The translations under genes and the position numbers were made by a program. A stretch of 64,000 nucleotides of DNA from Paragordius varius (taxonomy: Eukaryota; Animalia; Nematomorpha): NCBI GenBank assembly GCA_964247055.1, contig OZ176057.1, forward strand, positions 3,224,001 through 3,288,000, written 5' to 3'. The notes under the pieces are model-generated. The model did no database searches and was not told the DNA's origin. It worked only from the letters and a program-made list of their open reading frames with translations. Within the stretch, counting starts at the first letter, position 1. Each line of letters opens with the position of its first letter. Shown here one piece after another: positions 2,125 through 57,100 of the stretch.

Positions 2125-2155
<31 letters not shown>

Positions 2156-6199: not shown

Positions 6200-6304
<105 letters not shown>

Positions 6305-6430
6305 TAATAAAAACACTTAAATAAGAAATATATTTGGGAGTCTAATATTAGTGTTATAAAATTGAAGTTTGTTTTATTTTGCATTTTTTTTTACTTCATA
6401 AATTATGATGACATATATATACATATACAA

Positions 6431-6468
<38 letters not shown>

Positions 6469-6717
6469 TTATCTGAAAACAGCAAAATATTAGATTGAAC
6501 CAAGATTTATGTTGAATAAGAGATTATTTTTTGAAACGGCATAAAATTAATCATCATAATCTATAAACAAAAATTAAAAGCATTTGCATCAAAACCAAGC
6601 CAAAAAATTATCATTAACGCCCTAAGCTGATTGGCTGGATTATATTTAAATATTATTAATAATTCATCCTTTAACAATTACATACACACTCTTCTAATTT
6701 CTTAAGTTATATCCTTC

Positions 6718-7991
6718 ATGAATGTCATCATAGAAATATCAAGTTTTAAACCTTTGTTAACCCAAAATGCGGCCGAAACATTTTGTGTATTCTATATTCG
6801 ATCACTTCTATTTTTATCCTTTTTTGCATTATTAGTTAATAGTTATGTCCTGTACGTTTTATTAATCAAAATTAAAACGCCATATCGCCCATATTATTTT
6901 TTACAATGTATAACGGTTGTAAATATATTAATTAGTATAAATACCCTGTTCACAGTTAGTCTTTACTATATAGTTGGTGGAAACTTTGCTCCTAAGTGTA
7001 TACTTATCAATTTTTTGACCAAATTAGTCGTTTCTATAAAACTTATATTGGCTATGCTTAATTGTTACCTCATCTTAATGTTATTTGCGGATCGGCTCTA
7101 TGGACTGATATATTTTACTAGATTACGGTGGCTTAGAAGTCAAAAATTTTATATACTATCACCGTATATCTTGTTTTTCATCATTTCTATTCCTCACATA
7201 GTTGATTACCGATTGAGTGATGTTTATATGGTACAAACATTAAATTCCGATATAGTTTACAATGTTTTAGATTGCAAAAGTGAATCTGCATATGGTACAA
7301 TATTAAACAATACAAGTGTAACATCTATGAAAAATCATAGCCTACCAATCAAGATTCCCCCTAAAATACCCCTTTGTCTACTCTACCATGGCAAATCAAG
7401 GTATAATGTTCAATATGTCCGCCGAATTATAATAAGTTATGCAGTAATAATAATAACATTGGCTATTACCCTAACCGTAATGATTTATGTAGTTGTTTTT
7501 TACCTCCTGAAATATAAAAAACGGCGAGCCACGGTATTTGCCGTCCGCATGTAATTAAGCCTATCATCTTGGCTACTGTCGGAAATACTAGTTTTTCACC
7601 GCTGAAAAATGATAAGTCAAATAAATCTTTGACACCTATTTTAAATAACTTCTATGGCGTTAATCGAATTCGCCCGTGGAATGGAAAAACACAACGAAAC
7701 AGATTATCTCTTGTTTTTCAAAAATCAATTCGAAAATTCCTTTGTTTGTACCTACTCATTTTGGGCCATTTCCTTATGATAGCTCCTTCATATATTGTTT
7801 ATATATGTTTTAGCCAATATTATGTTTTGCGAATGGAACCGCCCATAAAACTACTTTACGCAAAACCGATAACAAAAATCATTAAACTCTTATCCTTATT
7901 TTATACCATTATCTATGTTTTATGTGATCCAAACCTACGAAAGGTTTTTAAAAAGTCATTCTACCCCAAAAATCAAATTAGATGCTGCTGA
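6718..7991 (+). pseudogene. Duplicate GPCR copy disrupted by a 7-bp deletion; ORFs 6718-7554 and 7569-7991 are its two halves
   Basis: Near-identical to 556-1836. Copy 1 reads TTTGCC-GATAAAA-GTCCGC (1381-1387) and copy 2 reads TTTGCC-GTCCGC (7542/7543), giving TAA at 7552-7554 just after TM5. Confidence 0.85.
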
Positions 7992-8112
7992 CTCTGGCAA
8001 ACAGAGGCATAGCTTACATATCTATCACCTGGTGCATGAATCCGGGATGGCGTTCTCCTGCATGCAACTCCTGCATTTAAAAAAATAATCAAATTCAAAC
8101 CGTGATCATGAC

Positions 8113-8215
8113 CAGTTGCATACCGAGCATTTGCTCCGCCCGAACGTTGCAACCTAAACACCATAGATACGACTCCTCAGTCATATAAAACTTAAATTAA
8201 TTAAATATATATAAT

Positions 8216-8249
<34 letters not shown>

Positions 8250-9607
8250 AAACTAAATTTATTCTAAACAAATACATACATGTAAATATTCTAATAAATT
8301 CTATAATATGTGATTTAAAAAATAATTGTAAATCTTTAGGCGAATTTTACAATGCAGATTCTCATGGAGTAGATATTTTTATAGAAATTTGGGATTGTAG
8401 GATGTTACTTCTAAGTCGAAAAGATGTCAAACCTAAAGTTTCCTAACTTTTATAACTCGATATGGAGTAGATCTGTTTCCCAATTTAACGGTTGCAATTC
8501 GATTGCTTTTAATTATTTTAACGTCAGTCGCTAGTTGTGAAAGGTCATTCAGCAATTTGAAATTAATTTTAACATTTATACGATCGACGATGGGTTAAGA
8601 TTGTTTTAATCACTTAACCTTGTTTGATAAAGAAAAATTTAATATGATAGATTGTAATGATTAATTAAAAATGCAATATCAAAATCCAGAAAATTTTTAC
8701 CTAAAAGAAACTTTTTCTCTTATTTACCACTTTCCTTTCCAAGTGGTAAAATCTCATTTTATATTTAATATTTTACGTATACGTGTCAATAAATTTTTGA
8801 TATCTAACAAATTCCAAATTTAAATTTTACATCTCTTAGCCTAAAGATTCGCTTTTCCATTCCGTGTTGCACTTTATCCAATACCTGTTTCATCTGGGAA
8901 TTTTTTTAGCTTTGTACCTGGTTTGATATAGAAACATCCCATTCACATACAAGTTTATTTTTTGGCTTCCTCGCAAAGTTGTTTCCGAAAATCTGATAAG
9001 TCAATAGTTAAGGACTCAAGCTCCTTTAATTCTTCATTAAAATTAATTTCAGGATCTTGCAATCTATGTTGAAACTTATCGATTCTTCTAAGTATTTGAT
9101 GCCTGAAAAAAATTAATGTTAAAAATTGAAATTTGAAACACTCTGAAGTAAAACGGATGTCTCACTTCTTGTTTCACTAGTATTTGCAGTATTTATACTT
9201 AAATCTTCTAATATCTTCAAATCATCTATTCCCTTAACAATGGAATTAACTACTGGAATTCTAGCACTCCATCGGGTTTCAGACTAACGATTAACAGTTT
9301 TTTTAGTTTATTTTGTAATAGGTTCCATCTAATAGTTAAACGTGAATAGAAGATAGATAATTAAACAAACGTTTTTAAGCGAAAAAATAAGTTACATGTA
9401 GGGAATAACTACATGATATAATGTTTGATCTTGATTTCATTTATATAACTTTTATATTATATTAGGGATTATTATGTAAATTGCTGAAAACCACTTAAAA
9501 GTTGTTAATTTTGCATAATTTAAATTAAATAAAAAAATTAATTAGGCGCCTCTATAACGGCGCCCTGGGCATGATGCACCCCCTTGCCCCTCCTTGGTAT
9601 GCCAATA
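8113..9607 (-). mobile_element. Second copy of the defective hAT element
   Basis: Colinear with 1959-3512. Ends are CAGTTGCATACC and GGTATGCCAATA, with the same split-orientation transposase remnants. Confidence 0.85.
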
Positions 9608-27402: not shown

Positions 27403-28183
27403 GTCTAGAGTGAGGGGTTTCCCCAACGGAGCCTAAGCAACATTATAGCACCAAAATTTAGATATGGTTGATTGTAAAATTTTCTTGGGTATTCAGACAA
27501 TCATAATTCTTTAGAATTAATGTCATTATAGAGGTTTCGATCGAACCTGGGAATGTTTGATAATTTTAAGAAAAAGAACTTTTTATTATCTGTTCTAGTT
27601 TAGTTCAACTACTACATAATTAATATATATAAAAAGGTATTTGAGTCTTTAAGGACTTAACCATTACCTATTTATTTTTTGTTCTATTTTACATTTTGCA
27701 GTAGTTTATATCCCAGAGCTTAATTTAAACTACATTAAAAGTTATTGTTGATTTAATTAAACATTGCTCGTATGTAGTAGATAAAAAGCTTATATTTTAT
27801 ATTTTGTGATATGAGCCTAAAATTGAGGCAGCTTTAAAACATGATTGAGACGAACAGATTATATTATCAGAAATCAAGGTTTTGCTAGTAAAATTTAGCG
27901 GAAGCTTTTTGAAATAATTTTTTACAATTTTCAACCATATGCATTTAGTAGCCTATTGCTTTAGTGATTAAATTTTAAAAAAAATGGCGGGTGAGAGGAG
28001 GAATAAATACAATTTTATATATTTAAACTTTTTTTATAATGCGCCTAAAGGGATGAAGAAAGTTTCTTTTAAATTCGATCTAATACCTTAAACTTTTTAA
28101 TATGTTCAAATCTAATTGCTCTGGGATATAATACTGTAAATCAATGAAATGTTATTTATTACAATTTTTTGTTAATACTTTAA

Positions 28184-28757
28184 CACTTGGATACAACACA
28201 TACATTTTAGTGCTTCGATTCAAATTGGGGTAGTTAGATACCCCAGGCTTGGTCAAAATAAAATATTTCAAAAATATTATTGTATACATTAAAACCATGG
28301 CAAAGGTTTGCATTTTGCAACAGAAATACAATAAAAAATTCATTTAAAATCACGTGATATTGCTTATTCAGAGGTAAAATCCAAAGCTAAAAATTTAGCC
28401 ATTATAACATATGATCATAAGCTAAATATTAATATAATTGTAAAATATACCACTTTTTCTGTTCATATTAATGTTAAATGTGGCTTTAATAAAAAAGTAA
28501 ACTCAATTTTAGCTTGAGAATCATATAAAAACGATATTTGCAAAAATGTTGTAAAATAAAAATGGCGTCCAACATAGTTTGATACTGAACTTTTTTTCCA
28601 AAACTAAATTTTATTTAGATATTTCGGTTTTTATATATAATTTTTATTAGAATAGAAGCATAAATTAAAATTGAAACCGTTTCTTTTAGTTGATTTTTAA
28701 AAATTTAAGTTTTAATTTTGTTTGGGGTAACTAGATACCCCAATTTGAATCGAAGTG
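28184..28757. mobile_element. piggyBac-like MITE, family A (about 570 bp, TTAA TSD)
   Basis: TTAA|CACTT...AAGTG|TTAA with internal inverted repeat CTTCGATTCAAATTGGGGTA..TACCCCA. Confidence 0.85.
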
Positions 28758-28836
28758 TTAATAATGCAATAGACACTAAAATAAAATCATATGCTAACCT
28801 TCCCATAAATATATTCGCATGGTTTAAAAATACGGC

Positions 28837-31800
28837 ATGAAAATTAATCTTTATCCTTTAACAATATTAAATATTAGTGATCATTACAATCGATACCTTG
28901 CTCAAAATATTGGTTCTGGTATTATATTTTTAATTTTTAGTGTACGGCATCGTACTTGGTAAAAAGGAGGATAAAAACAAAATTTATCTTTTGAATTCAT
29001 TTGAAATCAGTGCATCAGATAATGTTATTGATGTGGATTTCATGAAAATTAAGGAGGCTCAATGTATTTTTAAAATTTGATTTTAGTCAAGGAAGTATTT
29101 GAGGACCTTGAGATAGTTGGTTGGTATAGTGTTAGCTCCAACACTGATTTAAAGGATGAAACTAACGTTCATGAACAAGTATAAGTTTTTATATTATTTT
29201 AGATAACTAAATTATATCCAAACATTTTATATCTAAAAATGAGTTGCCATTTTACTACCGAGAATGAGGTTTTAAATTTATTATTTATTAAATTTGCACA
29301 TATTTGACACCTCAGATAATATATACATATAATTATATATATAAAATAAAATTAGATACCTATCGCCATTTACGAATTTAATTCCACCAGTCCCGATAAT
29401 TTCAGTTCTGTACCCTATACTATTCATATTGATGAAGATGAAAGGATATCGCTGCAACATTTAGCTCATACGCAAGCGCATTCAGACAATGAACCCGATC
29501 TACTACGTAATTTTACGTTAGAATTACCGTCTATTCGGTTTTATAACAGTATCCATGACCATGACTATGATAATAGCACTTTTAAAAATGATCAGACGAA
29601 AAATATAACAGCTGTTTATCACGTGACTCTAAATTGTATTAACACTTGGATACAACACACTCATTTTAGTCCTTCGATTCAAATTGGGGTAGTTGGATAC
29701 CCCAGGCCTGCTTAAAATCAAATACTTTAAAAAGTATGGAAGGAATCCAATCCATTGCAAAATTTTGCACTTATATAACATTAATAAAACTAAATATATA
29801 AAAAGTTTCTTCAAAAATATTTGATATTAAATATTTTAAGCTAAAACCGAAAGGTAAAAATTTCGTCAACGTGACATGTGTCAAATGGTAAAATTAAAAA
29901 ATAATACATAATAAACCGCTTTTTTTATTTCTATCAATGTTAGATGTAATTTATATTAAAATTTAGCTTTAGTTCTACACTTGAAATTAAATTAAGACGA
30001 TATTTTGCAAAAATTTTGTAAGATAAAAATGGCGTCGAAGTAGTTTGAGATGGAACTTTTTTTCAAAACAAAATTTTATCAAGATATTTTGGCATATTTA
30101 TATAATTTTTAACAGGATAGAAGCATAAATTTAAATTGGGACCGTTTCCTTCAGTAGTTTTTTAAAAATCCTAACTTAAATTTAGTCTGGGGTATTTAGA
30201 TACCCCAATTCGAATCGAAGTGTTAATAAAAATTTGTTAATCTAAATTAATATCATAAACAAAGCATTAAAATCTTTTTATAGTAAAATCAAATTTTTAT
30301 TAATAGCTTTTCTATTTAAAGTTTCTGATATTGCCCAAAACAATTTATTTTTTGGGGTTTTTAAGTAATAGACATCAATTAAGTTTATTCATTGATATAT
30401 AGCACTTCAAATTTGGAAAGATATTAACAGTACTAATTGTATAATTATTTTTTTATTTAATTATCAGTTTCAAATGGATTACTAATGCAACAGTCAGCAC
30501 TTAAACTGTTAAATGAACGCTTGCAAAAACTTATAAAATATGTTCGAGATGTAAAGGATCAAAAAATTCCACCCGATTACCAAATTCTTCAAACGCTTGC
30601 GAGTCTTTTGAATCAAATTGATTCATTTTCTCAAAATAATCCCGCCTATAAACAAATGTTTTTAGAGGTTAATTTTATATTAGCTGGAATTATTTTTTTA
30701 CAGATAATAAATCCAAGACATGTATATATATATATAATTTAAGCCCATTATATTTATTAGAATTCTATTTTTTATTGATCTGGGTTTGTCTGGTTATAAA
30801 TGCATTGAAACCGGATTGCATTGCTTTTTAAAAACATTTAAAAAAAATTTCAAACGTCAGTTTATCACCTATATAAATAATTGTAAAAACTTAAATTTAA
30901 TTTTGAAAAAAAATGAAAAATTCAACTTAAACTATATTGCTAGATTTCAGCGGTTAATGCAGTTTTGTTTTTTCGGTAATACATATATATTTTACGTTTG
31001 TGGTAATGATGAATGCTTTATGTTCCAATCTATGAATACTGCTTTTTAAAATAACAAGTTTAAAAAATTATCCCATATAAGTTTAAAGAACAAAAATGTA
31101 AGAAATATATGGTTTTGACTCGATTAAAGATGAAAATTTTAAATATTAAACCTTTTTTTATTGTATTTAATTATAACATTATGCATTTGGTGCAATTAAC
31201 TTTGGTCATAAACCCATTCATAGTTTTATCATTCGATTGTAATGTAATTTTTTATATATTATCGTATTTACAGCTAGATATAAATCAAATATGTTTAAAT
31301 AAATATATAGATTATATATATATATATATATATATATACATACATTTACTTTGTATTTTTATTTTTTTAGTAGGATATAATATATTTTATAATAGTTATA
31401 AAATAATTTTAGTTAAACTTATATAATAAAAAAGAAAATGTATAAATATTGCGCAATGATTCAACATTTATATACGATAAGGTGAACATTTTATTTAATA
31501 TTTGCATCTTCTATCATTTAACGATTTGGATTCTTCATTTTTTATATTGTTCCTCTTTTGGAATTTTTAAAGGCCTATTAAATAAGAGGATAGAACTAAC
31601 TTTAAATTATCTAAATAATGAAATTTATAGTTTTATTAACCATTTTTAGTCAAAATCAACCTTTTTTCAACTAAACGCAACATTTAATTGTCTTTGCTTG
31701 AAAAATATTGCGTTTGCTTGAAAATATGTTCCATTGAGTTGAAAATGTTGCATTTGCTTGAAAAAATGTTGCTTTTGACTTAAGAATGGGGCACATATGC

Positions 31801-33011
31801 ATACCATTGTTCGGTTATTTTATAGGTAAACGTTTTGGCAATCAGGCACATAAAGTCAATAATCCTTCGAAATTTTTCAAAATTGACCTTGATTGAATCA
31901 ATCAATCAGATGATATCCATTTGCATACTTTATCACTTTAATTTGGTCTTTGACTTAAAGTTGGTCCTTGATTTTATCTAGTTTTTAACTTTTATTCATT
32001 AAACAGTCAGCATTCAACTATCTTATCATTTTAAACTATTTTGCTTACCCTAAATTTTAAATCAATATTTCTTAAATAATATTTTAATATAAATAAAATT
32101 TTAACACATAATAAAAAAATATTTAAGAATTCTGCGTTATTAACTACAATTTTTCCTAAAAAAACACTTATAAGTTAAAAATTTTGTTGAATTGGAAAAA
32201 ATTAGAAAAGTGATTTTTGAATGAAAAATTTTTATTTTAAATGTATAAATATACAATAAATATAGATTAGGTTAAAAAACAATAAAATAAAAAATACATC
32301 TAATTATGGTAATAAGTTAAAAAATCAGGAACTAAAGGTGTTCAAAGACCAGCTTGAAATATTGAAGGACTAACTTAAAGACCTACTTAAAATGTTTAAG
32401 GACATGGAAGGCATATCCTGGATAATATGGATTTTTTGGGATAGATCATATATGAAATCTTTAGAGCTTATTGCTTGACTAATTATTTTTTTTGCTATAA
32501 ACCCTATTTTTGTTGTTTATTTTTTATGGGGTCAAACCCAAGAGTTTTAGCTCTTTCATCGATTTGTTAGCACGTTTTTCAAAAATGATGCATAATCATA
32601 TTTATTTTTATGAACGACTATCCATTACGGTATAGACTAGGCTTGCCTAACACAACCAGCCTCGCGGGCCGCATTAAATATGTTTATAAATATTTTATTA
32701 AATATCTAACATAATACTGTAATAACGGACACTATGACATTTAATTTATTAAGTTTTGCAAATGTGTTGTTTGGATTATTTATTCAGAAAATATTTACTA
32801 ATGTTCCTCTCGTCTAACATTTATATATAAACATATCTGGGCCCGTGTAAGGCCTTCTTCCTTCTAGGAGCTTTTTATGATAATAAGAAATAAAAAAAGG
32901 TGACAGAACACTCGAGTACATTTTCTGAGTTTTACAAATAAAAGTTTAACAAATAAAGTAATTAACGTATCCCGGATTAAATTTAGTAATTTATTACGTT
33001 ATTTAAATTTA

Positions 33012-33052
<41 letters not shown>

Positions 33053-33295
33053 TTTAAATTTGATAATTATGATTTAGGAGAACAACAATGTTGCCGTAAT
33101 GCGATATATGACTGAAATGATAAATATTTGTGATACATCCTGTCAAGTAAAAACTTTGTTTTTTAACCATTCCTCATATACGTGCAATAAATGTTTTTTA
33201 TTTCGTGTTCACAGTTTGCCGCTGATAAAACTAATGGGCACAATGTTATGACTGGAACCAGGATAATGGATAAGAAGAAGGAATTACACCAATAA
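28837..33295 (+). CDS. COPS6: COP9 signalosome subunit 6 (MPN domain), 8 exons
   Basis: Exons 28837-28918, 28941-29063, 29087-29178, 29203-29268, 29356-29506, 30468-30667, 33078-33146, 33215-33295, all phase-consistent. Motifs LYPLTILNISDH, VYGIVLGK, LNSFEI, KEAQFKEVFEDLEIVGWYS, EDERISLQHLA, MQQSALKLLNERL and NNVAVMRYMTEMINICDTSCQF parallel CSN6. Confidence 0.9.
29643..30222. mobile_element. Family A MITE inside COPS6 intron 5
   Basis: TTAA at 29639-29642 and 30223-30226, with the same ends and body as the other copies. Confidence 0.85.
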
Positions 33296-33422: not shown

Positions 33423-34833
33423 ATGAATAAACTTCCTAAAAGAGGATATATGTTTTCTACAATCATTTTCTGTGTGTTGATGTCTTTGTCCCACAGCATC
33501 CATAAACATTGTGACAGGACGCCGCCCAAAAATGGGGCTTTAATTTGTGATTATCAATTTCATGGTTAAAATTATAATATTACGTTTTAGGTCAATTTTG
33601 TATGATTATGTGTAAGAACCCGTATGATTTTGAATGGGTCCCCAAAGCTACTCTCTACATTTGCATGTTTGATACAGGAACTTGGGTAACTGACCCTAAA
33701 GATGTTGAGTTAATTGCACAGAATAAGTCAATACTATGGCCAGATTGTGTAGAACAGCAAGGTAATTATATGCTTTATTTCAATTAAAAATTGTCAAAAA
33801 TTAATTATATTTTGCGATTATAGCTAATAGTACAAATGAGACTAGACGAGGTGCGGAATTGCAATACTTTGATGGCGATTGCATTGTTCAAGAGGTCCGT
33901 AGCAAAATGCATCAATCCTTTCAATTACAATTCCAAAATGCAGCACTCGGCAAATACATTGGATGCAGTGTGAAAGAATCTCAAAGGTGTATCCCTAAAA
34001 ACGTGTCTATCATCTGCTATTCTGACACCGAAAAATTTGATAATGCATCAAATAGCTCAGCGTTAGATAGCAGCAAGACTAAACAATTTGGAGCTGAACA
34101 GTTCATAAAATGTACGCCGGGTGAAATGTGGTATGGAATTTTGAGTTTTGTGGAGAATAGGGATGTAAATAGATTTGCCATACTGTCTGAACCAGATATG
34201 TCACAGTCCACAAAGATTGTTTCCAAGCCAGATAGTGGTTGTAAACGATGTGTTTGCACAGAAAACGGGGAAGCCATGTGTTTTAAGTGTCGCAAAGAGG
34301 CAGAAGAATGTAATGAAGTCATAGCTACCCAATGTTATCCCGGTATTAATATGGCTTTACCAGCCAATAACAATAATAACATGGGGAATGAGTTAAACAC
34401 ATGCCAATGTGCTTTTTGCAGATACGATGAGCCTCTCCATGGTAAACCATCACAAATGAATGGGACCAGAATGGGTTTAGGGATTGGATTTTCTTGGGAA
34501 CTATATAGTCAATATGTCGAACTAAGTTGTAGTAAAGAAAGAGCAAAAGCCATAGCCGTTTACCATCAAGCAAAAATGGGTACTAAGAATGTTTTTAAAA
34601 AACATTTTTTGGTATTTTCACATATAAAATCAAATATTTACATAGGTGTTTATACGAACGAATCTCAAAACAAAACTAATCTTGTCAACTTGTGGAACAT
34701 AATGCTTAGATATCCATCTCATTTTTCATCCTCTCATTATTTGGGTCAATACTTTCAACGCAAAAATAATTTTAAAACAACAAATTATACCGATGAAAAT
34801 CCAGCTCCTATTAATAACACCAATGCTCAATAA
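33423..34833 (+). CDS. Secreted Cys-rich protein: signal peptide + sushi/CCP-like module + degenerate pacifastin-like modules
   Basis: Exons 33423-33564, 33591-33761, 33824-34833, with a possible extra in-frame intron at 34580-34645. Features are a hydrophobic N-terminus, CDRTPPKNGALIC..FC.IMC..PYDF..YIC..GTW..WPDC, CTPG...CKRCVCTENGEAMC and CYPG...NTCQC. Confidence 0.75.
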
Positions 34834-34853: not shown

Positions 34854-35936
34854 TTAACCTATTATAAATTTTACTTTTTCTCTCAGTAATAGGAGTTGGT
34901 CTTTTAAGTCTTTCAAATACCAAATCAAACCCTGGAAATAATCAGAAAACCTTTCATATATTTCAGATAACTCAGGCGGGTCTAGTTTATATTTCAAGTC
35001 TCCTATTCTATTACAGAGTTCAGCAACTTGAGTGATATCATAATATTTATGAACAGACTCAGATTTCGGAAGCTTAAAGTATATTTTTAAAACGCTGTCC
35101 CAACGATAAATTAGTTGAATATACTTTTCACATAAAACTATTTTATCCCGAAAAAAATCCCGGATATATAAAATATCAGTCGCGTTTGACAAAGTTTTGT
35201 TGTCCAAAGAAATTTGCTGATTCGAAACAATAGTTTTGGTCAAAAGGTTAGTATTTGGTAAAGTATTAAAGAAACGTGATAAAGAAGTATTTTCTTCATT
35301 ATTGAATATTATTTCTGTTTTATGAATAATTTCATCATTAATATTGTCTATTTTAAAGGAATTCGGAGATGAATATGTGACGTTAAAAAACTGATTGGCC
35401 TCGTTTAGCAATGAAATTAATGATGGAAGATAATCTAAAAAAATTAAAAGCTCTAAACCTAGAATAGTATGTAAAATTTGCTCCAGATGTTTAATAATTT
35501 TTAAATTTTCGGTTGCCTTTAAAAAATTGTCACGAAGATTTTGGACATTAATATTTTTAACTATTGTTTTGAGAGGTCCATGATTATTAAAATAAAGATA
35601 GGTGTATGTGGATATCAAGATTGGATATTCACTTTTGTATTCTAAATACCAATGATAAAAATATTTTGTAGATTCATAACGAAGATCACTGAAAATTTCA
35701 TTGTTTTCAAGTATAGTCAAGGTAGAGAAGTGTTTAAAATACTTAAATAAAATTTTACGGAATTCAGGATCTTGTAAAACTTTATCATTTATTTCTTTTA
35801 ACGTTTTTAGACTTTGTTTTAGATTTTTAATGCTCAATATGCGCATGAAAGCCAATAGATCCTTTTCCGCTTTTTCGAAATCACTTTCTATATTCATGTG
35901 AATAATGGTTGATTTAACGAATGTGGATAATGCCAT
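34854..35936 (-). CDS. Intronless hypothetical protein, 360 aa, predicted mainly helical
   Basis: A 1083-nt ATG-initiated ORF in very AT-rich DNA is unlikely by chance. No family motif was recognised. Confidence 0.65.
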   Translation of the reverse strand: MALSTFVKSTIIHMNIESDFEKAEKDLLAFMRILSIKNLKQSLKTLKEINDKVLQDPEFRKILFKYFKHFSTLTILENNEIFSDLRYESTKYFYHWYLEYKSEYPILISTYTYLYFNNHGPLKTIVKNINVQNLRDNFLKATENLKIIKHLEQILHTILGLELLIFLDYLPSLISLLNEANQFFNVTYSSPNSFKIDNINDEIIHKTEIIFNNEENTSLSRFFNTLPNTNLLTKTIVSNQQISLDNKTLSNATDILYIRDFFRDKIVLCEKYIQLIYRWDSVLKIYFKLPKSESVHKYYDITQVAELCNRIGDLKYKLDPPELSEIYERFSDYFQGLIWYLKDLKDQLLLLREKVKFIIG

Positions 35937-37199
35937 CTGACCTTGTGCTAAAATTAAGACTTTTCCTAATATATCAAATTTTATATGTCATCCAAATTAA
36001 AACATAAGAAGAATGAATAAACATTTTATTAACTTAAACGAATATGTTTTGACAATTTTACACTTTTGTGTCTCAATATTGGGGTAGATCCGAGAGATCC
36101 TTTTTGTAAAACTCCAATTTTGAAAGTTCTATTTTTAAAAAACATTGTTCTCATTAGGAAGCTCATATTTTATAGTTTGAAATCGCGAGAGCTCCAAAAC
36201 ACAATTGAAACGGACAGCTGAAATTAAAATCAAAATATATCAAGTTTTTGTTGGTAAAATATAGCCTGGAAGCTTACTATATATATTTTTTATTAATATA
36301 TATATATATATATTTGCTTGATGCTTGGACAAAAATTATAGAAAATTGCGCAAAAAGTGTGAGATAAGAATTTTTTAATTTTACATTTTTTTAGTTATTT
36401 AAAGATAGCATATTTTTAAAATCGGCTTAATATCTTGAATAGTTTTTAAGTTATTCAAATTTCAATCTTTGGGATATAAGGCTACCCCAATGGATAATAA
36501 AATTTAAATAAAAAATTTATAAATTTAACATTTGGTTACAACCCATTCTTTTCACACCATTTATTTGGGATATTAGAATTCAGGCTGACTAAAATCAAAA
36601 TTATAAAAAGTACGGAATAGAAACAAGTGCAAAAGTGAGAACTTACACATTGTTCACAAATAATATCCTGTTACGAAAATGCACCAGGATAATGGTGCTT
36701 TTAACACTTCGATTTAAAGGGAGTTTCTGAATGCCAGAAATGTTTAGGTTGTTATTTTTAAAATACTACTGAAAGAAACGGTTCTAATTTAAATTTATGC
36801 TTCTATCCTAATTAATTTATATAAATAAGCCAAAATATTTTGATAAAATTTAGTTTTGATAACTCCGTATCAGACGCCATTTTTTTACAACATTTTTTCA
36901 AAATGTCATGTTAAAACCTAAAATATATTTGACAATGATATTAACATAAAAAGTGGTACATTTTGCATTATTTAATATTTAACTTATGAACACATGTCAT
37001 GTAAGGCTAATTTTTTACTTTTTAGTTTTACCCTTGAATAAATAATATCCAGTAATTTAGAATAAATTTTTTACTATATTTCTGTAGATGAATGTTATAT
37101 AGCTGCAAATATTTGCCATGATTCAATTCATTACATATTTTCAAAAGAGTGATTTAAAAATTCATTTATCTTTTTGTGGCAAAGGCTCCATATAATGGT

Positions 37200-44527: not shown

Positions 44528-44800
44528 AATTAGAGACAATATGTCTGAATTCAATCTATGATTACTTCTTTATGATTTATCTATAATTAACAGAAATTTA
44601 AGGTCGTTTCTCCAGGTATTTTGCCCTCCTCCCCTATTTTTGCCCTTCCTGGGCGGAGAGGGGAACGTTGCTTTCTTTTCAGAACCACTAGGCTAGTTTT
44701 TTCACCAAATCAAATTTAATTATCTTAAAATGCTATAATTTTGTGCCAAATAAAAATATGCATTTTTGGTCCGATCACAATATCAATAACTTATTTTTAA

Positions 44801-45358
44801 CACTTCAATTCAAATTGGGGTATCTAAATACCCCAGACTAAATTTAAGTTAATAGTTTTAAAAAATTATTGAAGGAAACGGTCTGAAATTATATTTATGC
44901 TTCTATCCTATTCAAATTATATAAATATGCCAAAATATCTAAATAAAATTTTGTTTTGAAAAAAAGTTCCATGTCAAACTACTTCGACGCCATTTTTATT
45001 TAATAAAATTTTTGCAAAAAAGGCAAAAATTAAAGCTTATTTTTTATTTAAATTACATAAAACATTAATAGTAATAGAAAGCTGTTTATTTTGTATTATT
45101 TTTCAAATTTATTATTGCACACATGTCACATTGATTAAATATTTACCTTTCGGTTTTAGCTTAAAATAAGTAATATCAAGTATTTTTGAATGAAATTTTT
45201 TATATATTTTGGTTTATTAATGTTATATAAGTGCAAGATTTTGCCATGGTGTCAATTCCTTCCATATTTTTTAAAGAATTTAATTTTAAACACGCCTGGG
45301 GTATTTAACTATCCCAATTTGAATCGAAGGACTAAAATGAATGTGTTGCATCCAAGTG
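44801..45358. mobile_element. Family A MITE (opposite orientation)
   Basis: TTAA at 44797-44800 and 45359-45362. Confidence 0.85.
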
Positions 45359-45934
45359 TTAATTATATAATAAAAATATACTTTTAACCATTTTGCTGCC
45401 AAATTTATACTGTGCAAACTTAAGCTTTTTTGTGTAATGATAATATATCAATATAATGTTTTATGCATGTTAGAATAAATTAATATTTTTTCATCCCAAG
45501 CAAAAACTCAATATAAAATTACATATGTAATGAATTGTTAAAAATACAATGATGTTTATGTTTGGTTCTTAAATTAATGCGATAAATTACCTTTTAATTT
45601 TTTTGTAGTTTTTTATGTCAAAGCTTAAACTTGCATGCTTTAAAGGTTGTTTTTGTTGAAATTTAATAATCCAATAATTCAACATGGATAGGTCCGAAAC
45701 CTAAATAAACAACTGATTTTAATATCAAGTAGATCATAATATATCTAAAAAGTTTATAACATCATCATTCTTATAATATACACCATAATCCTATTATATT
45801 ATCGATTCAAAAAAATCCAAAGAAAGAAAATGGCGACGAAAAAGTTTGAGATTAAAATTTTTTACTTCCATAAAAAAATTTGAACGTATAAAATGCGCAA
45901 TACTCTTAATTGATGGATGAATGGATTATATTTT

Positions 45935-46900
45935 TATTTTGTAATTGTGGTAACTAGAATTAATTGTGTTTTGGTTAAATAATAAAATATTCTTTAAGGT
46001 TGTAATACCAATTGACAAGATAATATCATCGGCACGGTACAAATTTGCAATTTGTTTTTTTTTATTTCAGGTCCAAAAATCGTTTTAAACGATTTCAATG
46101 TTAACCAAAACTTCTGTTTTAGCTATGTGGTGACCATGAGAACAAATGTGCTCAGCAAGGCCCGAATTTATTAGAGCGTAGTTGGGTATGCTCTTTTAAC
46201 CTTTGGTTTAGGATGCTACCTGTTTCTCCGACATAAACACCGTCACAGGGGCAGTAACGTTATAAATGCTGGTCCAGCGAGCTTAACAGATATGCGATTC
46301 CAGTTCTCTCCGATACAAAAACCACCTTAGTCAATCCTTTCAAGAAAAATGCTACCACGCCTAGCTTTTCAGCAGAATCCAAAATCATACCACTAAATAA
46401 TAATCAACTGAACAATTTGTTGGAATTTCTATCGAAAATATAACCACAAAAATCGGTCTTTTATTAAACATATTTAACATACGTACAACAATATATAAAC
46501 TAATGTCCAAACTTATTAATACCATAAAATATAAAGGCGCAATCCCGCGAAAAAAAGATCAGACGGTTGTAAAGTTACGTGCTCCTGTGGCGGTGTTTAC
46601 GTCGGAGTAGCACCATGGATCAAATGTTGAAAGAGCATACACAATACATACGCTCTAATAAAATCCGGACTTACTGAGCACATATGTTCTCAAGGTCACC
46701 ACAATCAAAACAGACGTTTTGGTAACATTGAAGATCGTTCAAAACGATTTATATATTAACCTCTTACAATAAAAAAATAAAATGCAAATCTCAACCGTGC
46801 CGATGGTATGGTCTTGAACATCTGGAATTACAACCTTAAATAATATTTTATGATTTAACCATATCACAATCAACTCTAGTTATTAAAATTACAATACAAC
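45935..46900. mobile_element. Inverted pair of Penelope-like retroelement 3' fragments (GIY-YIG endonuclease region)
   Basis: Arms about 45935-46270 and 46560-46900 are diverged reverse complements. The right arm reads KVTCSCGGVYVG...SGLTEHICSQGHH, the PLE GIY-YIG and H/C pattern. Confidence 0.7.
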
Positions 46901-47181
46901 GATTGTAAAATTCACCCATTTATCAATTAAGGGTATTTACAACTAGTTTTTTTTCAGTAATGTTTACTGGTTTTTTTCACTGGTCATAAATACTTTTACC
47001 ACATATCACTCACTATCTATATTTTTTTAATTTTTTTTCTCAATCTTGAAAAAGGTTGTATATCGAAAATTAGATATCTCAAATAAATTAATAGAAAATC
47101 ATTTATATTCGTTTTTGCAAAAATGGATGAAAATTTACCCCATTCCCATATCATCCAATATTTTTTAAATATAATTTTTAA

Positions 47182-47757
47182 CACTTCGATTCAAATTGGA
47201 GTATCTAAATACCCCAGACTAAATTTAAGTTAATAGTTTTAAAAAATTATTGAAGGAAACGGTCTGAAATTATATTTATGCTTCTATCCTAATAAAAATT
47301 ATATAAATATGCCAAAATATCTAAATAAAATTTTGTTTTGAAAAAAAAGTTCCATGTCAATACTTCAACGCCATTTTTATATTACAAAATTTTTTGTAAA
47401 ATATCGTCTTCATTTAGTGTTAAGGGTAAAATAAAAGCTAATTTTTTATTTAAATTATATCTAACATTGATATTAATAAATAAAGCGGTTTATTTTGTAT
47501 TATTTTTCAATTTACCATTGCACACATGTCACATTTACTAAAATTTTACCTTTCGGTTTTAGCTTAAAATAAGTAATATCAAATATTTCTGAATGAAATT
47601 TTTTATATATTTCATTTATTGATGTTATATAAAAACAAAATTTTGCCATAGTTTGGATTTCATCCAAATTTTTAAAGAATTTTTTTAAACAGGCCTGGGG
47701 TATTTAACTTCCCCAATTTGAATCGAAGGACTAAAATGAATGTGTTGTATCCAAGTG
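47182..47757. mobile_element. Family A MITE (opposite orientation); further complete or degenerate copies at about 22682-23000, 24850-25000, 36705-37130, 55705-56243, 59458-59965
   Basis: TTAA at 47178-47181 and 47758-47761, with a body shared with the other copies. Confidence 0.85.
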
Positions 47758-49261
47758 TTAATAAATATATTATATCATCATAAATATATCTGCAATTTAT
47801 TCGTGTTATTTTTAATTTTGAAACAAACAAGTTTGTTAATATGAACGAATTCATAAAACTGTGTAGGTTTAAATGTAAATAACTAAATTAATTTAAAATC
47901 CATCTTATAACAATAAAGCTGTGTATCGCGCACTAAATGTAGCTTCACACTTGACAAAAAATTTTGACATTTTGAAAATTAAATATAAAGTACAAAAATA
48001 GTATAAAAAAATGGTCCAACACCTAAGAATTTTTTTTGAAGTTTTTCGAAAATTTTTGGGCTCGATTTAACATTAAAGTGATTTTCAAAATTAAAAGTTT
48101 TGGATATAGAGCCATGTATTTTATGTAATTCCAAAGAGCGCAAAAGACTCAACTTTCGAATGCTATTAGTCATTTAAATCAATCTGATGTAAAAGTTATT
48201 TGGGTTTATATGGTCAAATTTTTCAACTCTTAATATAAAATTTAAATAAATCTTGGAAAAAGCTTTTGTTTTTTCAAAAAAATTATCATTAATATAATTA
48301 TTTTAACTAGTGGGTACTATAGTGCATTTTATCTGAATTTTATTACACAATGGTTATAAAAGATCAATAATGCCTATTTTCATCCATTAGTTTAAAATTA
48401 TATCAATTAGGAATAACGCTCTCGATAGGTATTTGTATTTTCTCAAAGAAAAACATTTTATCATAAAAAATCAAAATACTATCTTAGGTAGAATTATAAT
48501 TTTTATTTCAGATTTACTGTTGAAATATAAAATATCAGAAAATTTAAAAATTCGAGAGGCTAAAAAATTTGTTGTCTAGTGTAATAAAAGCTGTATTATT
48601 TTTCCGAATAAAAAACAATTTATAATAATTTATAACACTTTTATACGCATTTACATGGCTATGGAAAACTTAAATTTTCACTTTTCTTATCTAAATATAT
48701 CATCAATCAATATTAACTTTAGTTTGGTAAAACAAATAAGACACATTGCCAAATATAATATGCAAAATAGTTTTTTAAAAATATCATGTGATTTAGTATT
48801 GCCCATATATTGCAAACTTTTATAATATTTTAAATGCTATATTTCCAAACATATTTGTAATCATCGCTTCGCATTTTTCCTAAATGCAGAAAAAAACCGA
48901 TCTAAAATATTAATAAATACTATATATATATATTCAGATGTTTAAATTATGCACATTGGTTGTCTTATTATACAAAATAAAATCAATCATTTACGGCAAT
49001 AATTATGTAAATAGATAAAAAAAACGTAAGACAAATATAGTTAACCTACTGTGATGTGCGACTCCTCGGGCTATATATACATGCAATAAAAACGTGTCGC
49101 AATAAGGTGACGTTTCGAACTGGTTCAATTTAGTTTTTAGACGTAAATGTAACTTGTTTGCTCTAGGTATCTCAAGGACAAATGGGAATATAAATTACCT
49201 TTGAAAGATTCATTCGTTTTTTTGAGTTTAATATTTTGTAATTTTTTTCCCGTTTTCAAAA

Positions 49262-52200
49262 ATGATATTTCTTTGCGTTTGTTGGCAACTTGTGTTGATT
49301 TGTCCAATTTTCAGGTATATAATTAGTATTAAAATATTTGATTAATTTATTGGTTATAAAATTAACAAAAATGTTTCGAATATAAATTTAATTTTTCCGC
49401 AAAAAAGCATGGGATTGGCCCCGAGACAAAATTTGTCAGGTGTAACGGAACCAAACAGGCTTCTAACATCAGCCGTACGTCATGATATGAGCGAGATTGG
49501 TGCTCCAGAATCTTTTGCTGTTTCAAATGGTTAGTTAAGTTGATGATTAATTTTATTGAAAATCACATATTTTTTATATTTATATGTTGTGTGGGATAAG
49601 GTATTATATAGTTATCTTGGCTTATTTATAATTATATTTGAATTATATATATATATATATATATACTAATCATCAGGTTATGCTATGCGCTAATTAAGAT
49701 ATATATTTTGATTATAAATCTTATTTATCACTACTGATGTCTTTATATAACATTTTAAGTCAATATAAAATGGAAACTTAAATTTAAAAATCTAGTTTTG
49801 GCATTTTAGTTTTAATAAAGGAAACTATGACTAGTTGTATCTTTATTAAGAGGCATATTATTTGATGTAAGGAATGTAAAACCAGTTGATATTTTACCTA
49901 TAAAAGCCATATTTATATTATAGATGCCCTTGAATAAACATCAAACTTTAAATATAAACGGTCATCAAGTCAGGTCAAACATAGATAAATATTTGTACTT
50001 ACATTTCATAAATATAATGCTGTCAAACCAAAGTGCGACATATTTGCCCTTGAAACATTTTGTATAAAATAATATAAACATAACCTCTTTCGTACCTATT
50101 CAAGGCAAGGTCAAATTTGGATAATATTTGTACACTTCTATAATTTTTATTAATTTGATTAGAGCGATGGCGCTTCTCTAGCGGACCGTAGAATTTGACG
50201 CGGTTTAACCCGTCAGTCCCCCGATCAAACTGTAGACTTGATATTAAAATTACAATAATTCACAATACGCTTATTCATATAGGCCGATTTATTTTTTGTT
50301 GTTCATTTTGCAAGACAAGTCAACATTATAATTGACAAATAAAATATTTAATTGTAAGATTGTAATTTAATAAAAAGAATTTTGTTTAGTGCCTGTGTTT
50401 ATTTGTTTTGGTTGTTGTCTGCTATTATTTTTGTCTGTTATTTGATATTTATATTCTAAAACTGTTATTTGAATTTTATTGAAGCGTTAAGTTTCAACAG
50501 ATTAAAAGAGTTTAACGGCCAATTTAAAATGTTTAAGATATCTAAAATGGAGCGTTGGACACTCTGGAAGTTTAATCAAAGTGACAATGGTATATGCCTG
50601 TCACACTGTTTGATCGGTCGATATATTTGGTCGTATCTAAATATTATAATTCGTTTTTAAATGAACATAAAAGTGTGCTTTCTTTGTGAAGACTAAACGC
50701 TTAAATTGGTTTACTTGACGGCTAAAATCTTATTGTTAATATAACTTAAAATAAATTATATCGTAACTTTTAAATTTTTCAATTTGCCTCTTTAACTTTA
50801 AATAACAAAAATTATTATAACACCTTCTATGTCAGCATATTGAGCCATGTATAAACCGTAATTTTTTATATAACTCAGCTAGCGCATTTTACTACATAAC
50901 AATGTTTTATTTTATAGCTTTCTCAACTGTAAAATTAAAAGAAATAAATTATTATGTATATTTTGCTTTTAATAATTGTAGGGAAAATATTAACAAGCAC
51001 TCAACTTGGCGTTTATGAAATATTTCCTTTTTCCGATCCCCCTAAAAAACCGCAATTCCTATTTCGCATGGGAGAAGAGCCCTGTGGTAATTTTATAAAA
51101 TTATTCTTGTATTTAAACTGTATTATCCACCTCTATAAAAATGATTTTAAAAAATCATATCATTCAGGTTCATTAGAAAATGAGACCACTTGCGGACGTC
51201 CCTTAGGGCTTACAGTGGATAGTCAGGGTCGCTTTTTAGTTGCCGATGCTTATCTTGGTATAAGTGCTTATGATTATGAAAGAAGTATGCTATATAAAAG
51301 TTGATTATAATTTTGTTACAATTTTAAGTTTTGATTGTTCCCCGTTAATTTAGAGATCAAGACATCCATCTTAAATAAAGCCTTTATGGTAAAACGAAAA
51401 TTAATGTTTTTGAATGGTTTAACGACCGATGATAGAGGACACATCTATTTCACTTCTTCCAGTTCCAAATGGGATCGTCGTGATTATCTTAAAGCTTTGA
51501 TCGAAGGCAAATCTGATGGAAAGTTATACATTTCATTTTTTTCATTAAATAAGACATGCCAATGAGGTGGGTTTTTAGCGGATTTCTTTGCGCGAAAATG
51601 CATAAATATTATTTGAAAGACATTTTTGTATCGTCTCCTCTCTTAATAAAACTTTTTATACTTATAAACTTAGAAGTATACCTTTTACCATTTGCAAAAA
51701 AAAATTTTTTCATAATTTTATATAGAGTGTTAATGTTCCATCCCACATTCCAGCTTTATCGTGTACTTATTAATGACCTTAATATTCCTAACGGAATACT
51801 GTTAACACCGAACGGAAGGCATTTATTGATATCAGAAACGGGCGGAGCCAGGATTTTAAAGTAAAAATTCCAAATTTGATTGTTTATTACCATATTTTTG
51901 GGAATATCATTCGATCATCTATTGTATGAGAAATAAATAATATTTGTCTGAATGTCCCCATCGTATATGACTCTTTTTTGTGGAAAAATATAATTTAATT
52001 CATTTTATTTAATTAAAATTAATATCCGTTTTGTTCAATAATGTCTTGTATTTGATATTATTTTACCCGTTTAAGAAATAATTAAATTTTTATTATTATT
52101 TGGCTCATTATAAGGACTCCAAAATGCCCAACTATTCGTGGGAAGATATCTCTAATTTTAAACGATTATAACTTAAAAACCGAAAACCTATATATAAATC

Positions 52201-54142
52201 AAAAATGCCGGATCACCATGAGCAAATTTGTTTAAAGCTTGTTTATTTTAAAAATTTCGATATAACGGTTCTATTGTTATTAAACTGGCTAATGCCAGTA
52301 AATATTCAAAATACCATTTACACTCCAAATTCACCCTTAAACAATTTAAATTCACCTCGAACAATTCAAATTTTTCCTAAAATAAATTATGTTTTTCAAA
52401 ATAAAAAATTGCCCAAATATATTATTATTTTTAGAAATGTTTATTCAAAAAAATATCACTGAAAGAAAACTAAGCCATAGAGATATATTTTATAATAATT
52501 TTGAGTTACATTAACCCGAAAACACATAATTTAATTGTTCTAGGGTCAATTTGAGCTGTAAATTATATGTTGGAGCAAATAATAATTTTGCTCAAAATTA
52601 ATAGGAGGTTAAAATGAGTGAATTAAATAAATGTATATAACAAATGTTGAAATTTGCAATGTTATTGTCCCATTTTTTAATAAATAATCATGGTTAAGCG
52701 TAAAGTTGAATGAATATTTTATAGATTTTCCCATGTTTATTCTAAAGAAGGAGATAACATAAATATATATAACTAAATTTCTTAATTATATTGTTTTAGA
52801 CTTCATTATAGCGACGCGTGCGGCCCTGTTTTTTTATAATTTAATTTAGTTACATCCGTATATATGCTATGAAATTACATTAAAGAGCAGTACAATAAGC
52901 CATATCTGTATTTAAAATGGCCAAACGAGTGGGTGTTTAATTCACATGTCATTAGCTATGAATGAGATTTTTTGTATTTATTCGTAACATACTAATTAAA
53001 AAACTGTATTTTTTCTCAACTATTTCATGAATAAAAACGAATAATCCCAACTGGCTAGACATGCATTTTAAATACTATGGCCTAAATAGCGGGGGCACAC
53101 TGTATTGTTATAATAATAATATCAATATGTTATAGGTACAATCTTAGAACGAAACAATTAAAAACTTTAATCGATTTACCCCTCATACCTGACAATATAA
53201 AGTTTAGCGATAAATCTGGGGATACGTTTTGGGTAACAGGTGCAGCTAGAAGAGATTTGGGAGCTTTTTCCTTCCTTGACACTATTCAACAATGTCCCGC
53301 TTCAACTGCTGAGCTTTTAAAGGTAATAATGTATAACTGTAAAAATATAAAGAGCGATAAAAAAATTTTTTGAAAATACAACCATACTTTTTCAAAACCC
53401 CTAATTGAGTTATTTTAATACAATTCTAATAAAATACATAATTCATTGTGTTCGAAATCTACATCTCTAATTCTAACTTTGCAATTTACAACAATAAGTT
53501 TTAAATAAAAAGTACAGCGGTTTTTTTGAACTAAATATTTGTCTTTATGTTTTTACGTTTTTTCCTCAATTTTTACTTTAAAATAAAGCAAAAACTGCAC
53601 CAAAACTTATCTCTTTTTAAAAAAAGTATTATTAATTAAAGGTATCATGTATAAGAATTATTTTGGAATCGAATAGAATAGAGTATTTTATAATAATATA
53701 ATTACTATAATTTATTTAAAGGATTTCGAAAAATGATAGTTATTTATTTTTATAAACCGTATATTAATAATTCAAAGGTGCTTTAATATTGGACTACCCT
53801 AGCGCTCCGAAAAATGGCTGAATCTAAAAATATATAAAATAATTATAAAGGCCGCGCACATTACTTAAAAACCCCAACTTAAAAATATTAAACAAAGTTT
53901 TATTTAAGGGAATTATGTATAAATAATTATTTGCATAGTTACCTCAAGGTGTTTTACTACCACCCTATGGTCTTATTCTTGAAATCAATTCTACGAATGG
54001 ACAAATCATACGATCAATGCACGATCCGGAAGCCAAAAAAGTGTTTGCCATCAGCGAAGCTTACCAATGGAATAACACACTTTTCCTTGGCTCTTATCAT
54101 AATCATTTTTATGCCACGTTAAATTTATCAACAAATTCATAA
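49262..54142 (+). CDS. APMAP: APMAP/hemomucin-like strictosidine-synthase-family beta-propeller protein, 8 exons
   Basis: Exons 49262-49314, 49408-49529, 50982-51086, 51168-51284, 51354-51522, 51726-51860, 53136-53322, 53939-54142, all phase-consistent. Motifs GAPESFA, CGRPLGL, VADAYLG, FLNGL..D..G.IYFT.SSSKW, IPNGI.L, LPLIPDNI..FWV and SMHDP..ISEA..LFLGSY. The symbol means family-level homology; orthology is untested. Confidence 0.88.
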
Positions 54143-57100
54143 TTATTATGTCTTTTCATAAAACACTTTAGCATATATTAGTAAGTATAAGTTGCTTGTT
54201 TTTCATTAATTTTTGCTGATAGCATTTATTTAGCAAGAGAAAAATTATCGGCTAAAATATTTCTACTATTATTAGCCAATAATAAAGCTCCTGGCTATAT
54301 ATATATACTCTCTGGCAATATTTAATGATAAACTTGTAATGTAGTATTCTTACCAATACTAAATTAATTAAATAAATATTTTATGTGCTATGTATTTATA
54401 TTCAATATGCCTTATTTTTAATAGCTTACAAGTGTTATTGTGAAATTAGTAGGGACTGAAACTTGGCGTTTATAGCCGTTAACTTAAGATCAAAGTTAGT
54501 CATTTATATTAAACCATAAACCCATTATATTTGGAACGAGTTTTAAATAACAATGAATTAGATTTGTCGTATTCTGTTGTGGGAATCGAAGGCAAAAAAC
54601 AAAGTAATCTAATTGGAGAGTCGACGGTCATAAAAAATTATATTGTTTAAAATATAAATATTGGAATTTCTAATGGTACTTTTGATTTGATCCTCACGAT
54701 TCAGGGAAAATACTACCACTATTTTGGTTAAAATACATACGAAATTTCGAAATATTAGCGCATATGTTAAATGTTTTTTTGGCAAGTAAAGGCTTCACAC
54801 CTAATCATTCTATCAATATATAATTAATAAAAGCAAATAATATGTTATTTAATATTTTTTATAACACTTAAAGGCTCTAATTTTTGGCCTATTTTTTTTT
54901 ATAAAAAAGATTTGATTTTTTTTTATATGATATATTATAGCACCATTTCAAAAGGATAATTTTATTATTAAATAAAAATTTGGTTAAATCATGTTTTATA
55001 ATATTTTTAGGCATGTTGGAAACGGTATAAAATCATACTTTCAATAATTTGCACTGCTTTTATTTTTTGTAATGAATAATATGTGATTTTTGTATTCTAT
55101 AAACCAATAATAAATTGTAACTTAAATATGAAATTTATCTTTAGGGCTATCATTTTAAACTAATTAACTATGAGAACCTTTTTCTGCTATATGTCATTTT
55201 AAATAGACCATATGTTATTTAACTGTATCTATTCACCGAGTGTTGAGGTGTCTTCCTCTCCTCCTAGCCTTAGCGCTATAATTATCCATTTTCAATATGG
55301 GTAGGACCATTGTGCTCAAACCGCGGCGCTAAAACTCTTATGGCCCTGTATTATTTATGAAATTTTTGGCCTACATATTTGCAGTATAAATATCTGCAAA
55401 ATTGCACCAAATAGCTTTGAAATAATTATCGATATTGTGGCCGTTGGGACAAAAAAATATTTTTTTATCCCTTCAAAATTTTTGTGTGATTACCACCCCA
55501 AGTCTATTAAACATCTTTTTTGTGTTATTGATTTTTGATGCCTACATCCATTTTTTCCATCATTTCTCTGTTACATCATCCAAACTTGATACCTTTTTAG
55601 ATGAAGAATACAAGTTAAGTGTTCAATTTTAATATAATAGAAAATTGGCTATAATATTAGAATCAAATATAATATTTATATGTTAAACAATAAAATATGA
55701 CAGTTATCGCTACGATTCAAATTGGGGAACTAAATACCCTAGACTAAATTTATGTTAAATTTTTTAAAAAAAATCAAATTTATGCGTTTACCCTAATAAA
55801 ATTATAGAAATATGCCAAAATATCTTAATAAAATGTTTTGGAAAAAAAAGTTTCATGTCAAACTACTTCGACGCCATTTTTATTTTAAAATATATGCAAA
55901 ATATTGTTTTTATTTACTTTTAAGGGTAAAATATAAGATAATTTTTAATTTAAATTACATCTAACATTGATAGAAATAGAAATAGCGGTTTCAATTTTAC
56001 CATTGCTAACATGTCACGTTCTTTAAAATTTTACCTCTCAGTTTAGCTTAAAATAAGTAATATTAATTATTTTTGAATAAAACTTTTTATATATTTCGGT
56101 TTATGAATGTTATATAAGTGCAAATTTGCCATGGTTTCGAATTCTTCCATATTTTTTAAAGAAATTAATTTTAAACAGGCCTGGGGTATCTAACTACCCC
56201 AATTTGGATCGAAGGACTTAAATGTATGTGTTGTATCCAAGTGTTATCTATACTTTACATATGAGCCGATTTAGACAGCTGATTTAAAAATTAATTCTTA
56301 AAAATTGCTGTTAATATAATTAATTATCATTTAATTTTTATACCAAAATATTTTTAATGCCAGAATTTTTAGTTATATGATTTAATAAAACCAAAAAAAT
56401 GGCCGGCCAAAAGGTTGTGATAAGTATATTAGATGTGGGCTCCCAAATTTCTAAATTGTTTTGTTCTTCTATAATGGGATAGTTTTTCTTAAAATAATTG
56501 CAAAGATGCTGGCAAGCGAGAGATGTTAAATATATGCTAAATTTTGATATCAAAAAATTTTCACAATGCATATTTAATCCAAAATTTAATTTTTAGCAAA
56601 TTTTGTTGAGCGTACTTCATACTCTTCTGAAGCTTGATAAAAACGGTAGTCTTGAGATATATATTTCGATGATGCTGAACATTTCTATCAGCTCAGAATT
56701 ATGATCTAAATGTTCATTATTCGAATTTGTATTGAATAAACACATTGAGTATAAGGATTCAACAAATTTTTAAGCAATATCTTTAAATTAAAATTCTAAA
56801 GCAATAGTATTTTTAATATCTTGAAGCGTTTTTATACATCTTCTATTATGCCAAAATATAGTAGGAAACGCGTCAACAAATTTTACTAAAATTTTCATTT
56901 TTTTTACCAAAATTCCAATACTAATTTTAGTTTATATCTTTAACATATATTTAACATTTTTGGCACGAAATAGGTCATTTTCGCATTTATTTTAAGAGAA
57001 CTAGCCCAAAGAGGAGGAAAAAAATTTGTGAGTTTCAGAGCCCACATCCTAAATTTTATTTTTTTTAAAAATTCATGTATTGCATGTAGTTTATGTTATA

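Follow-up and report, generated by a model that had tools for sequence, protein, structure and literature searches.

Three micro-introns of 22, 23 and 24 nt, probably ancestral and shrunken, in the 5' part of a COPS6 gene

The 5' part of a COPS6 (CSN6) gene located in the window, i.e., the whole 64-kb stretch of DNA that was analysed, contains three segments of 22, 23 and 24 nt that, judging from the sequence, are very probably genuine U2-type GT-AG introns, constitutively removed from the transcript, of ancestral origin, and shrunk by deletion to their present size. Because their sites and phases match those of introns from a spider and from chytrids, they are best interpreted as shrunken ancestral spliceosomal introns and not as artefacts, and both chance and assembly error appear effectively excluded as explanations of the three segments. 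Micro-introns are confined, in this window, to the 5' ends of genes and are accompanied by a second class of introns of 62-93 nt. The organism is a probable third animal lineage with introns below 30 nt.

The COPS6 gene and its three micro-introns

The COPS6 gene reads as an intact open reading frame of 287 amino acids distributed over eight exons of the + strand, from the ATG at 28837 to a stop codon ending at 33295 (frame check), in which an MPN/JAB N-terminal domain is followed by a MitMem_reg helical domain, and which is orthologous to CSN6. Taken one by one, the exons tile the CSN6 homologues from end to end. Exon 1 (28837-28918) aligns with the MPN N-terminus of these homologues, and the alignment similarly accommodates exon 2 (28941-29063), exon 3 with its VGWYS motif (29087-29178), exon 4 (29203-29268), exon 5 (29356-29506), which also displays a weak PDB match to CSN6b, exon 7 (33078-33146), and exon 8 with the stop codon (33215-33295). 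Exon 6 (30468-30667) corresponds to MitMem_reg (Pfam PF13012, E 1.6e-11); its best database relatives are annotated as CSN6, and its top natural-protein matches in the PDB, though weak, are CSN6, ahead of PSMD7. With the MitMem_reg match and the CSN6 homologues, the identity proposed for this gene in the first-pass annotation holds.

Database searches were run with the separate exons, the joined COPS6 model being compared only with homologues already fetched. Among these approximately 130 sequences, the spider CSN6 came out best, with 34% identity over 273 amino acids (E 1e-46). The protein is very divergent and forms a long branch in a CSN6 tree which is uninformative on its placement. A representatives search returned fungal CSN6 only, and no close relatives were found by protein search (exon 6 and a 360-aa ORF), by cluster look-up (two intronless ORFs), by a metagenome scan or in the Atlas; hairworm sequences were absent from all of these results.

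Micro-intron 1 (22 nt, phase 1) occupies positions 28919-28940, micro-intron 2 (23 nt, phase 1) positions 29064-29086, and micro-intron 3 (24 nt, phase 0) positions 29179-29202, all on the + strand. All three start with GTA, in the donors GTATTA, GTATTT and GTATAA, and end with TTTTAG. At the frequencies of the window, GT and AG ends on three segments would arise by chance with a probability of ~4e-9, and the interiors, devoid of any C, contain 2 G/C in 57 nt as compared to 33% in the exons (P ~6e-8). Excision of the three micro-introns yields the junctions NIGS/VYGIVLG, KEAQ/FKEVF and VHEQ/ITKL, whereas retention of at least one of them stops the reading frame at 41, 73 or 100 amino acids in all seven combinations. 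Micro-intron 3 is a multiple of three in length and yet contains two in-frame stops, its retention leading to a stop at amino acid 100. Joint retention of introns 1 and 2, which together measure 45 nt and are in frame overall, was considered and discarded, exon 2 being then shifted in frame up to a stop at amino acid 41.

All GT/GC-AG choices comprising one to three introns between 28837 and 29268 and keeping an open frame, i.e., 6,286 splice models, were enumerated and scored on a profile made of 130 CSN6 homologues, from which the gene of the window was left out. The model with introns of 22, 23 and 24 nt ranks first (171.6 bits), followed by a model (168.6 bits) in which donor 1 is moved 6 nt upstream (28913, GTTCTG) to give a 28-nt intron 1. 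The best model in which all introns measure at least 30 nt reaches 123.4 bits, and that with all introns of at least 40 nt 108.8 bits. The three GT-AG segments pointed out in the first-pass annotation are recovered at the same positions and with the same junctions, and its assertion that all three must be removed to keep the frame is borne out by the seven truncations and by the top profile score. The introns of 961 and 2410 nt it had reported in the same gene, the first of which carries a MITE, are all present, together with two introns of 87 and 68 nt which were absent from its list.

Ancestry of the intron sites and competing explanations

Intron sites were mapped on the own genomic loci of six orthologues, with a single animal, the spider Uloborus, among them. 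This comparison, which had been suggested as a check on the three segments, shows that all three match intron positions of the spider and of two chytrids. Micro-intron 1 shares its site and its phase with introns of 2168 nt in the spider and of 74 and 140 nt in the chytrids. The site of micro-intron 2 is that of introns of 558 nt in the spider, 71 and 230 nt in the chytrids, 1361 nt in a moss and 1061 nt in asparagus, and the site of micro-intron 3 is common to all six mapped orthologues, where the introns measure 66-2196 nt. Three random insertion points would all meet spider intron sites and phases with a probability of ~8e-7. The correspondence extends to the whole gene, all seven COPS6 introns matching spider sites. 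Intron 4 (87 nt, phase 0, 29269-29355, +) is shared with the spider alone among the six orthologues, which fits an animal; intron 5 (961 nt, phase 1, 29507-30467, +) lies no more than one alignment column away from its ancestral site; intron 6 (2410 nt, phase 0, 30668-33077, +) also occupies an ancestral site, and the site of intron 7 (68 nt, phase 0, 33147-33214, +) is common to the spider and the chytrids. The sole unshared site among eight in the spider is a phase-0 intron at alignment column 190, which is missing here from COPS6 exon 5. With their GT-AG termini, their location at homologous spliceosomal sites and the restoration of the conserved frame upon their removal, the three segments display the characters of U2-type introns.

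Different boundaries for real introns, either a 28-nt intron 1 or longer introns removing conserved codons, have a small probability. The donor at 28913 is merely 3 bits worse than the preferred one; however, it is the GTA donor of micro-intron 1 that coincides with the ancestral site, alternative boundaries for introns 2 and 3 cost 10-17 bits, models deprived of sub-30-nt introns lose at least 48 bits, and the 28-nt version would still be a micro-intron. A dead or dying copy of COPS6, in which ancestral introns would have been eroded below a spliceable size, is very improbable. The strong divergence of the protein, and the near-absence of the sampled words from five RNA-like runs bearing the same species label, would agree with such a decay, but no stop or frameshift interrupts the 287 codons of the eight exons, the conserved motifs are kept and seven out of seven splice pairs are canonical. 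Moreover, the NPL4 gene of the window shows the same anatomy, so that two housekeeping genes would both have to be dead while remaining intact. Introns of the XBP1 type are similar in length to the COPS6 micro-introns. Removal of the latter by a non-spliceosomal route of this kind (IRE1/XBP1-type endonuclease and ligase), short non-spliceosomal introns being mentioned in PMC5435141, or a recoding bypass, is nevertheless even less probable than a dying gene. The GT-AG ends and the homology to spliceosomal intron sites argue against the former, the interiors almost without G/C being in addition poor material for the required stem-loops, and a bypass would need two frameshifts together with the read-through of stops.

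An assembly artefact, which would turn the 22-, 23- and 24-nt segments into spurious insertions, has a negligible probability. In a screen based on shares of sampled words, none of the sequencing runs on record as RNA contains the COPS6 stretch. The best runs contain 0.75-0.87 of the words and run X5 contains 0.55, as compared to 0.30 expected from mRNA only; these shares cannot tell DNA from RNA, X5 falling between the mRNA-only value and those of the best runs. Words spanning the three segments account for 8% of the total, and a share of 0.75-0.87 is by itself insufficient to exclude the artefact. However, spurious insertions would have had to take up GT and AG ends (~4e-9) and to fall on exact ancestral sites in the correct phases (~8e-7), and the same pattern occurs in two other genes.

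Splice signals, intron size classes and possible mechanism

One of these two genes begins at an ATG at 33423, 128 nt past the COPS6 stop, and its predicted first intron (33565-33590, +) measures 26 nt; retention of this intron stops the frame at amino acid 48, vs 440 amino acids once spliced. The gene (33423-34833, +), with introns of 26 and 62 nt, encodes a protein rich in cysteine, whose start resembles a signal peptide and for which Pfam gives no match. The other one, NPL4, contains three predicted micro-introns of 25 nt (58688-58712), 28 nt (58797-58824) and 25 nt (58947-58971), all on the + strand, whose retention stops the frame at amino acids 11, 37 and 86, respectively; the exon following the first of them matches UN_NPL4 (E 6.5e-4). 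NPL4 (NPLOC4; 58667-62952, +) has later introns of 284-1552 nt and extends past the modelled part. The routine use of micro-introns put forward in the first-pass annotation thus finds local support in these four additional introns of 25-28 nt. A fourth gene, an APMAP/strictosidine-synthase-like gene (49262-54142, +; 363 amino acids as modelled) with introns of 69-1452 nt, contains no micro-intron as modelled; its first intron, of 93 nt, is uncertain, as its acceptor is odd and A-rich, and the true structure may be a different one. Since this first intron measures 93 nt in the model, a 5' position does not force a small size.

The 24 introns of these four genes are distributed among three size classes of 22-28 nt (7 introns), 62-93 nt (6 introns) and 203-2410 nt (11 introns), with a gap between 28 and 62 nt. 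All seven micro-introns lie within 342 nt of a start codon, and the remaining 17 introns measure 62-2410 nt. Micro-introns represent 7 of the 10 introns located up to 350 nt from the ATG vs none of the 14 beyond (p 3.5e-4, in four genes only), and their 5' enrichment gives p 2.6e-4 by rank and 0.017 when their adjacency is taken as given (same four genes).

The donors of the seven micro-introns are GTA in five cases and GTT otherwise. Their acceptors read TTAG in six out of seven (p 0.005) and TTTTAG in four out of seven (p 0.003), relative to shuffled interiors. A candidate branch A occurs at -8, -7 and -7 in the three COPS6 micro-introns, with no significant fixed motif; a T-R-A branch motif fixed at -7 was discarded, as it fits only one of the three, and an A at +15 in five of the seven micro-introns falls short of significance (p 0.057, post hoc). 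U12-type introns are characterized by an extended donor RTATCCTT and by the branch sequence TCCTTAAC. This type was rejected for the COPS6 micro-introns in view of their donors and of the complete lack of C in the three interiors. Rfam detected neither an snRNA gene nor a spliced-leader gene in the 64-kb window.

Removal of the micro-introns would rely on the major spliceosome, presumably through intron definition, with recognition across each of them. U1 would act on the minimal GT(A/T) donor and U2AF on a short U-run followed by AG that replaces the polypyrimidine tract, and U2 would pair loosely with a U/A-rich stretch, with a branch A located approximately 13-18 nt from the 5' end, at a distance of 7-14 nt from the AG. 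U1 and U2 would then have to act one after the other, not side by side. Mis-spliced copies with early stops would be cleared by nonsense-mediated decay, and downstream introns would remain at least 62 nt long, lengthened by MITEs. The 13-18-nt branch geometry is feasible, as Stentor introns are spliced with a branch A at position 10-11 (PMC9505925). Taken together with the canonical U2 and U2AF kept by myxozoans with introns of 20-27 nt, according to a 2026 survey (PMC13644364), this branch position suggests that no new machine would be required.

The confinement of the micro-introns to the 5' ends might most simply reflect the help given by the cap-binding complex to U1 near the transcript start, an effect reported to reach ~250 nt in Drosophila (PMC4889658); this is the slightly favoured explanation, though held tentatively. 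A promoter-proximal deletion bias combined with the exclusion of TEs is a somewhat less probable reading, and plain local clustering a rather doubtful one. It is conceivable, though on balance unlikely, that a third animal lineage, probably Nematomorpha, possesses two splicing regimes per transcript, a cap-proximal regime for introns of 21-28 nt within the first ~350 nt, and an ordinary regime with a floor near 60 nt further downstream. Should this two-regime reading be true, the minimum intron size would depend on the distance to the cap, instead of being dictated by the spliceosome alone or by the compaction of the genome. The 5' confinement in any case makes a testable question of whether the cap-relative position sets the minimum size of an intron. 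From a practical point of view, annotation pipelines with a minimum intron length above ~21 nt would produce wrong 5' ends for many genes of this genome.

Comparison with known systems and genome context

Introns below 30 nt were already known from animals, since the myxobolids (Henneguya salminicola, Thelohanellus kitauei, Myxobolus spp.) show median introns of 22-27 nt in the 2026 survey (PMC13644364). Among the 51 animal genomes of this survey, such introns are reported only from myxobolids and Dicyema japonicum, and more lineages are expected (PMC13644364). The list of organisms with introns of 20-30 nt given in the first-pass annotation (ciliates, nucleomorphs, microsporidia and dicyemids) therefore needs to be completed with the myxobolid myxozoans (PMC13644364). 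Going by this survey, the 30-nt floor of animal introns has been broken in print only for these two groups of reduced parasites, in which the shortening is attributed to compaction (PMC13644364). The occurrence of equally short introns beside kilobase, TE-filled introns in one gene separates miniaturisation from compaction.

The micro-introns resemble those of myxobolids by their GT-AG ends, conserved positions, GTa donor, the adjacency of short introns and an AT-rich genome (PMC13644364). However, the myxobolid genomes are compact and relatively poor in TEs, whereas kilobase-long, MITE-filled introns occur here in the same genes, and the myxobolid 3' signal is described as an AG with a missing or extremely short pyrimidine tract, whereas TTTTAG/TTAG is kept here (PMC13644364). 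Tiny introns also dominate in myxobolids and dicyemids, whereas they represent 7 out of 24 introns here, a small sample, and are located at 5' ends (PMC13644364). In dicyemids (Dicyema japonicum, Dicyema sp.), sub-30-nt spliceosomal introns and a conservative exon-intron structure are similarly described, with, however, about two thirds of introns below 30 nt, a 3' signal reduced to AG and no 5' confinement mentioned (PMC6543705, PMC13644364); the median intron of Dicyema sp. is of 27 nt (PMC6543705). Of the features that define the myxobolid/dicyemid type, introns below 30 nt at conserved positions and the GTa donor are found in the window, but the AG-only 3' signal and the dominance of short introns are not, in this small sample.

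In flukes and tapeworms such as Opisthorchis felineus, introns peak at 37, 90 and 3000 nt and microintrons are clustered and 5'-enriched in a large genome (PMC6530080, PMC6157073). Adjacent 5' micro-introns and three size classes (22-28, 62-93 and 203-2410 nt, in four genes) similarly occur here; however, the lowest flatworm peak lies at ~37 nt, whereas the micro-introns of the window, of 22-28 nt, centre at ~24 nt, below the 30-nt floor. Ciliates contain tiny introns of 15-16 nt in Stentor (PMC9505925) and ~25 nt in Paramecium (PMC5014332). As in Stentor, a short distance from the 5' end to the branch would be handled by a U2-type spliceosome within a U-rich interior, but all introns of these two genomes are tiny, whereas here a single machine must also cope, within one transcript, with introns 100 times as long. 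In the window, a myxobolid size and a fluke-like polarity with three size classes occur together with an acceptor that remains U-rich, in a genome rich in TEs. No published case combining tiny 5' introns with a TE-rich genome was found in the literature searched, nor was any publication on intron length in hairworms; the word 'intron' is absent from two hairworm genome papers.

The window has a GC content of ~27% and is rich in DNA transposons, which is compatible with, though not diagnostic of, Gordionus montsenyensis (26.93% GC, 64% repeats), and the view expressed in the first-pass annotation that the genome is not compact holds locally in this MITE-rich context. The MITE of COPS6 intron 5 (29639-30226, 588 nt) is bounded by TTAA at both ends, possesses terminal inverted repeats and recurs elsewhere in the window as at least seven other copies, complete or partial, with 67-87% identity. 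Members of this TTAA-bounded family, of ~585 nt and by inference piggyBac-like, occupy positions 28180-28761, 29639-30226, 36701-37147, 44797-45362, 47178-47761, 55704-56246 and 59454-59969. A distance of 75 nt separates the end of the copy at 28180-28761 from the COPS6 ATG downstream, so that the promoter of this gene is either very short or partly located in the MITE. An upstream ORF of two codons (ATG GTT TAA, 28819-28827, +), 18 nt ahead of the COPS6 ATG and sharing its frame, would be relevant only if transcription begins further upstream.

Other elements of the window include hAT and GIY-YIG fragments. The GIY-YIG fragment at 46100-46723 (-) matches PF01541 (E 0.0018) and has an inverted copy with 78-79% identity, an arrangement also seen in Penelope-like elements. 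No Penelope elements are reported in the genome paper on Gordionus. Searches of Pfam, the protein database and the Atlas yielded no relative of an intronless ORF of 360 amino acids (34854-35936, -). Finally, a tandem duplication (1-3482 and 6094-9596, +; 88% identity) comprises hAT transposase fragments and an intronless gene for a 426-aa membrane protein, GPCR-like by eye and devoid of any Pfam match, the second copy of which is split into two ORFs.
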